Below, in pieces: positions 3,512 to 3,982 of a stretch of 64,000 nucleotides of DNA. The number at the start of each line of letters is the position of its first letter. The stretch's first letter is position 1. This DNA is from Schmidtea nova (lineage: Eukaryota), in NCBI GenBank assembly GCA_044892505.1, contig CM097883.1, forward strand, positions 45,260,001 to 45,324,000. The letters run 5' to 3'. The notes under the pieces were generated by a model. It was given only the letters and a program-made list of their open reading frames with translations, did no database searches and was not told where the DNA came from. The translations under genes were made by a program, and so were the position numbers.

Positions 3512-3982
3512 TCAAAATAAATTGCAAAATCTTTGGGCAATGTTGTTGTTATTTATATTTGTGGGACTTAGGCAACAGTTTTCATACGATAAAACGCAAT
3601 TGATACAACCGAATCCCTGTTGTCGACAAAATTGACATTGGGATAAATTTATAAAATCACAACTTCTTCTTCTTGGAAGGCATATTTGAGTAGCCGGTGA
3701 TATTATAAAAACGCTTCTTGGATCAAAACAACAATTGTTATTAGTCTGAACGCAGAGTTCACATTGTGCTCGATTTCGATAAATTTGTGCACACCATTGG
3801 CATCTAGAAATTGAATAAACCTGACATTGGGGAAATAAATTTGAAGCGCTTTGTTGAGTTTGTGGTCCTTGCGAATTGGCGATTCCCAGAAAAAGAATCC
3901 TGACAAAATTTTTAACAAAATAATTTTATTGAAAAAATATTTCTACTTACACGAAGAAATTGATTGAAATAATAAAACTCAT
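3512..3982 (-). CDS. Secreted cysteine-rich protein, 139 aa, two tandem 8-Cys modules (exons 3982-3951 and 3899-3512)
   Basis: ATG at 3982; 51-nt GTAAGT...TCAG intron (3950-3900) joins in frame; hydrophobic signal peptide MSFIISINFFVILFLGIANS; 16 Cys in two copies of C-x7-C-x2-C-x(9/6)-C-x2-C-x6-CC-x15-C; stop TGA 3514-3512. Confidence 0.8.

Follow-up and report, generated by a model that had tools for sequence, protein, structure and literature searches.

A spliced, single-copy gene of the planarian Schmidtea nova for a predicted secreted protein with two homologous eight-cysteine modules

The minus strand of a 64,000-nucleotide (nt) stretch of the Schmidtea nova genome, called the window below and used for all coordinates, carries at 3512-3982 a two-exon gene for a small protein with a predicted signal peptide and two homologous modules of eight cysteines each. 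The gene is real: its mRNA of about 0.5 kilobases is spliced as had been proposed from the sequence, polyadenylated and very deeply covered in a library with the properties of complementary DNA (cDNA). Our comparisons give good support for the product being a taxon-restricted, secreted, cysteine-rich protein that forms a new family of a familiar kind. The fuller interpretation, which we consider probable, is that this single-copy, TATA-driven gene founds a new family and encodes an abundant, planarian-restricted, disulfide-stabilised protein secreted by a gland-type or epidermal secretory cell.

To obtain the gene model, we read the minus strand of 3200-4300 and spliced it by script, which reproduced the model of a first-pass annotation of the same DNA, namely two exons, a 51-nt intron at 3950-3900 and a product of 139 residues. 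The coding part of exon 1 (3982-3951, minus strand) has 32 nt, the ATG and 29 nt, or 10 2/3 codons, which encode MSFIISINFF, followed by GT, and thus the first half of the signal peptide. The intron (3950-3900, minus strand), which reads GTAAGT...TTTGTCAG and ends in CAG, is of the GT-AG type and in phase 2. The coding part of exon 2 (3899-3512, minus strand) contributes 128 codons and a TGA stop at 3514-3512, within an open frame that spans 137 codons. The spliced coding sequence has 420 nt and yields the 139 residues followed by the TGA. A program-made list of open reading frames (ORFs) had missed the gene because the exon-2 frame offers no ATG, GTG or TTG start. The first-pass description of the gene as unannotated holds for this list only, as UniParc already contains an orthologue (UPI0006054099). 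The published schNov1 annotation of S. nova probably contains the gene as well, since it was built on transcript evidence that included long-read cDNA (PMC11410931).

Four public sequencing runs (X1-X4) contain the stretch, and we aligned their contigs to positions 2800-4700. All four come from one 2024 study, and a second search for runs returned only this same study, so that the expression evidence rests on a single source. We read X1, X3 and X4 as DNA libraries, with the flanks of the gene covered in all three: X1 has a single error-free contig over 2800-4566, and X3 and X4 provide low-depth pieces, some of whose loose ends carry the Tn5 mosaic-end sequence. For run X2, 16,144 contigs were aligned, all within 3376-4015; its very great depth is restricted to 3440-4015 and is zero in both flanks and above 4015. 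Its depth is about 13-fold lower in the bin that holds the intron (3888-3951) than in the adjoining exon bins, and its best-supported joint, from 3898/3899 to 3950/3951, skips exactly 51 nt with CT..AC ends on the plus strand, corresponding to GT..AG on the gene strand (cut +1). Thirteen contigs contain this joint, so that the splicing which the first pass had only deduced is now directly visible.

Both ends of the transcript are also marked in X2. In 18 contigs, poly-T precedes positions 3438 and 3442 of the plus strand, which places the poly(A) tail 11-19 nt downstream of the AATAAA signals. The 3' untranslated region (UTR; 3438-3511, minus strand) is therefore about 70 nt long and contains two overlapping AATAAA signals (3462-3457 and 3458-3453), with poly(A) addition at 3442-3438. 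At the other end, 16 contigs stop at 3997 and continue into non-genomic letters that end in a run of G, as read on the RNA strand; we infer that these extensions arose by template switching at a capped 5' end. With a transcript start at about 3997, the 5' UTR (3983-3997, minus strand) comprises about 15 nt and the proposed start codon is the first ATG of the mRNA. From the poly(A) tails, the splice joint and the pattern of coverage, we deduce that X2 is a cDNA library. In keeping with error-prone long-read cDNA, many of its contigs are short and contain small indels. In one further X2 contig, whose depth of 507 compares with about 1.2 million nearby, a stretch of 47 nt with GT..AG ends is missing from exon 2 (3617-3663, minus strand). 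This skip would shift the frame in module 2 and is probably rare cryptic splicing or noise.

Upstream of the gene, the TATA box and the duplicated CCAAT boxes of the first pass could be located on the minus strand as a TATAAAT box at 4027-4021, which precedes the observed 5' ends by 30 nt, and as three CCAAT motifs at 4251-4247, 4237-4233 and 4216-4212. The CCAAT motifs, which are putative regulatory elements, lie inside a tandem repeat found by repeat search (4177-4280, minus strand), which consists of two to three copies of a unit of about 35 nt and lies roughly 180-285 nt upstream of where transcription starts. Over the promoter and the CCAAT repeat (4099-4344), a contig of the Tn5-type run X3 reaches a depth of 13.4, compared to 3.6-5.8 along the body of the gene and 0 beyond. 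An active promoter with open chromatin might explain this, but contig depths are too crude to decide the matter.

The protein begins with a predicted signal peptide of 20 residues (3872-3982, minus strand, spanning the intron), which we assigned from the hydropathy profile and the rule of small residues at positions -3 and -1. In agreement with the first-pass proposal of a leader, the hydropathy profile has a hydrophobic core over residues 3-17, and Ala-Asn-Ser stands ahead of the predicted cut. Cleavage would thus follow Ser20 and leave Gln21 as the mature N-terminus. A Gln-rich stretch of 15 residues connects the leader to module 1 (3680-3826, minus strand), which extends from Cys36 to Cys84 with the pattern C-x7-C-x2-C-x9-C-x2-C-x6-CC-x15-C. 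It is followed by the linker LPRRRS (3662-3679, minus strand), whose RRR at 3673-3665 is a putative tribasic processing site, and by module 2 (3524-3661, minus strand), which extends from Cys91 to Cys136 with the pattern C-x7-C-x2-C-x6-C-x2-C-x6-CC-x15-C. The 16 cysteines are therefore separated by gaps of 7-2-9-2-6-0-15 in the first module, 6 between the modules and 7-2-6-2-6-0-15 in the second; this spacing, 7-2-(9/6)-2-6-0-15, and the linker are identical in our scripted translation to those reported from the first reading of the sequence. The mature protein has a mass of 13.7 kDa and an isoelectric point (pI) of 8.5, and its composition is rich in Gln and Asn, being neither cationic nor amphipathic. 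If released at RRR, the two putative peptides would have about 66 and 50 residues, with pI values of 8.2 and 5.8 and a surplus of K+R over D+E of +2 and 0, respectively.

That the modules arose by internal duplication is borne out by their alignment, in which 49 residues match with all eight cysteines in register, a single three-residue gap, 31% identity and a BLASTP E-value of 4e-5. The alignment score of 73 was reached in none of 5000 composition-preserving shuffles (mean 31.7, standard deviation 6.3). When the cysteines were fixed in place, 54 of 5000 shuffles reached the observed score, which indicates a little similarity between the modules beyond the cysteines, as in the shared S-x-CQ-x-C-x-Q and NCC-x2-P. 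A 15-nt direct repeat in the coding sequence (3628-3642 and 3817-3831) is out of register with the modules, joining C1 of module 1 to C2 of module 2, and we take it as a chance occurrence.

In a word-index protein search, the only relative was the UniParc entry mentioned above (P0001 in the following), a protein of 137 residues that is 80% identical over all of exon 2. From its UniParc accession we presume that it comes from another Schmidtea or another planarian. Its N-terminus, MSFIPIAFVT, continues straight into the exon-2 sequence, so that the spliced form is independently attested in a second organism. P0001 retains all 16 cysteines and the RRR, which stands in a changed context (LRRRT in place of LPRRRS), while 25 other positions differ; an N-glycosylation sequon of the S. 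nova protein, NLS, is not kept, and the mature region is as well conserved as the leader. The probability that none of the 25 substitutions would fall on a cysteine by chance is 0.023 (hypergeometric), and the selection on a disulfide scaffold that the first pass had read from the module spacing thus receives modest independent support from this 80%-identical orthologue.

Broader searches did not extend the family. When the two-sequence profile was searched exhaustively with HMMER against 1.84 billion representative proteins, it returned only P0001 and one other protein (P0002), a low-complexity repeat protein of 1031 residues without a matched stretch, which we consider spurious. A word search with a four-module profile found no further protein, a scan of metagenome contigs found no relative, and exact look-up found no contig on record that encodes P0001. 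In the S. nova genome (1.25 Gb), neither protein nor module-profile searches yielded a paralogue, so that the gene is single-copy. A weak match in this genome (L002, E-value 0.01) covers a C-x2-C stretch that by eye resembles the C1 region of diacylglycerol kinases and is not a paralogue, nor are two further matches (L003 and L018) with E-values above 1. A genome-wide DNA pattern for the cysteine framework was uninformative due to (TGT)n microsatellites, with 3245 and 3599 matches as compared to 2647 and 3050 in the reversed control. Literature searches by topic, peptide words and accession found nothing on this protein.

Comparison to described families supports the first-pass statement that the pattern is not a recognised one. 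Searches of Pfam with hmmscan, using the 128-residue exon-2 product and each single module, gave no family at E-values up to 10, and the sequence profile search of PDB returned only a PHD finger (E-value 5.8), which we attribute to a chance likeness of the C-x2-C...C-x2-C type, a zinc finger being unfit for a protein with a signal peptide. A structure model of a single module with a predicted local distance difference test score (pLDDT) of 64 has three short helices. With this model as query, Foldseek found no match in PDB, and VIA-align, run against 48,161 chains, found generic helical hairpins only (best Z-score 3.3). A shape search of the ESM Atlas and feature searches gave generic or empty results.

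Several known proteins are nevertheless similar in their general construction. WAP, somatomedin B and the plant eight-cysteine-motif proteins are also small secreted modules whose eight cysteines include one CC pair, but here the pair is C6-C7 and follows two C-x2-C pairs, the spacings of these families do not fit the module, and none of their Pfam models matched at E-values up to 10. In the way it works, the protein may be compared to progranulin, the precursor of the granulins, in which disulfide modules likewise follow one another after a single signal peptide, with short linkers open to proteolysis, cleavage of the S. nova protein being putative. Granulins, however, have 12 cysteines with four CC pairs in a different spacing, and the S. 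nova protein showed no sequence match to them in the Pfam search at the same threshold. With a signal peptide by hydropathy, 16 of 16 cysteines conserved, a single relative at 80% identity and no paralogue, the protein has the features of the orphan secreted cysteine-rich class.

The closest resemblance is to the PSI domain (PF01437) of plexins, semaphorins and integrin beta, an extracellular module of about 50 residues that also has eight cysteines and begins with C-x5-7-C-x2-C-x6-9-C-x2-C. The spacing of the first five cysteines, 7-2-9/6-2, is close to that of the PSI exons of the S. nova genome (5-2-6..8-2-5), and in an hhalign comparison of the module alignment (A2) with an alignment of PSI exons (A3), the best register pairs C2-C4 of the module with C2-C4 of PSI. 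The modules could thus be highly diverged PSI domains and the protein a free-standing double PSI, an interpretation to which we give little credence. The same hhalign comparison reached a probability of only 1.8% over 18 columns, with limited power as A3 comprises seven PSI exons only. PF01437, whose gathering score is 23.1 bits, recognises neither the protein nor its single modules at E-values up to 10, and a genome-wide search with this model found 12 PSI exons, this locus not among them. The Trp of the C-x-W-C motif, invariant in the PSI exons of A3, is lacking in the module, where C4-x2-C5 reads CELC or CINC, and C6 and C7, which are 5-16 residues apart in PSI, are adjacent. The module model is helical, though too weak to settle whether the fold is that of PSI; no PSI chain was among the matches listed in the fold searches with this model. 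The arrangement also differs, as the modules here form a free-standing tandem pair after a signal peptide, whereas PSI serves as a spacer in large receptors. We therefore do not assign the module to PF01437, although a PSI-like knot, which in PSI domains is formed by disulfides C1-C4, C2-C8, C3-C6 and C5-C7, is possible as its fold.

Among the functional alternatives, the protein might be a pro-hormone or neuropeptide precursor that is cut at RRR by a prohormone convertase and trimmed of its basic residues by a carboxypeptidase, releasing two four-disulfide peptides from neuroendocrine cells. The signal peptide, the small size and the tribasic site between the modules, kept in P0001 despite changed flanks, are sequence features in line with this, and the predicted N-terminal Gln of the mature protein could cyclise. 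Yet the very deep coverage in an apparently general cDNA library would be unusual for a neuropeptide; the sequence has no amidation signal, no match to a known peptide-hormone family and just one putative site, without repeated peptide copies; and with 80% identity overall, the retention of three residues carries little weight as evidence, all of which makes a precursor of this kind rather unlikely. About equally doubtful is a defence molecule, such as an antimicrobial peptide or toxin secreted on the body surface or into prey. While the protein is secreted by prediction, disulfide-rich, taxon-restricted and highly transcribed, its low net charge (reflected in the pI values of the halves and the whole) and Gln/Asn-rich composition depart from those of cationic antimicrobial peptides of the defensin or macin type, to whose CS-alpha-beta or related models in Pfam it also has no match, and the gene lacks the paralogue expansion or hypervariability that are usual for toxins and antimicrobial peptides. 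A classical family of antimicrobials or toxins is thus disfavoured by the low charge, the single copy and a conservation that is even between leader and mature region. Finally, given surroundings rich in transposon ORFs, the locus could be non-functional, as a chance ORF, a pseudogene or transposon cargo. This is very improbable for a single-copy gene that has a TATA box and a poly(A) signal of its own, whose transcript is spliced, polyadenylated and deeply covered and whose intact orthologue keeps every cysteine.

We accordingly return to a planarian-restricted secreted protein of a gland-type or epidermal secretory cell as the best explanation. By this account, the leader would direct the protein into the endoplasmic reticulum, where it would be cut after Ser20, and each module would fold as a compact knot with four disulfides, giving eight in all. 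The 13.7-kDa product would then be exported by the secretory cell and might be abundant in planarian secretions, with a role in mucus, defence or adhesion; a proprotein convertase may also cut the conserved RRR linker into the two peptides described above. Several points weigh against this account. Its secretory cell type and extracellular role are conclusions drawn from the features of the protein, whose leader was judged by hydropathy and the small-residue rule. Confidence is low in the structure models, with a pLDDT of 41 for the AlphaFold2 model of the whole protein, which is unusable, and of 64 for the single-module model, so that the fold and the disulfides proposed above are putative. 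The P4 residue of the RRR site is Pro or Leu in place of Arg, making it a non-canonical furin site. Finally, X2 is not on record as RNA, its cDNA nature being deduced, and the depth of contigs gauges expression poorly and cannot rank it, so that 'abundant' is meant qualitatively, as a reflection of very deep coverage. A more far-reaching proposal seems improbable to us, namely that the module represents a new fold, a helical hairpin stapled by the two C-x2-C pairs and two more bridges, and that the protein is among the most abundant Schmidtea secretions and yields, by processing at RRR, two bioactive peptides with four disulfides each, for instance for surface defence or directed at prey.

The window consists mostly of mobile-element debris, including ORFs with reverse transcriptase and GIY-YIG domains of the Penelope-like type (10649-12460), a hAT dimerisation domain with DUF4371 (27160-29523) and a DDE_1 transposase (48156-49376). 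The gene thus lies among transposon remains but is present in one copy and has a promoter and a terminator of its own. In the region 4528-4680, short motifs (GATGGTCATAC..GAAGGTC.AAGG-like) occur at 4547-4575 and 4651-4680, and again near 4748. The motifs of this region reach word depths of 47,000-216,000 in X1, X3 and X4, the runs that resemble DNA libraries, compared to 4-37 in the flanks. They look like a dispersed repeat of very high copy number, situated some 550 nt upstream of the gene. Further out, 835 nt upstream of the gene, a run of N (4817-5046) marks an assembly gap or masked sequence. A scan of positions 1-12000, including 5087-6314, against Rfam at its gathering thresholds gave no RNA family; it did not extend to weaker or variant hammerheads.

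Lineage-restricted secreted cysteine-rich proteins are common in animal genomes, and as a member of this common class, the gene does not bear on a long-standing open question. Planarians, however, are a main model of regeneration, and many of their top-expressed secretory genes have no known relatives or function. The gene described here is a well-defined example of such an orphan secretory gene, with transcript start, intron and poly(A) site mapped, and its product contains a compact tandem eight-cysteine scaffold that is recognised by no family library. Should the protein turn out to be a main constituent of mucus, of granules or of defence, it would offer a way into the biology of the planarian surface and add a small new disulfide scaffold for structural studies.
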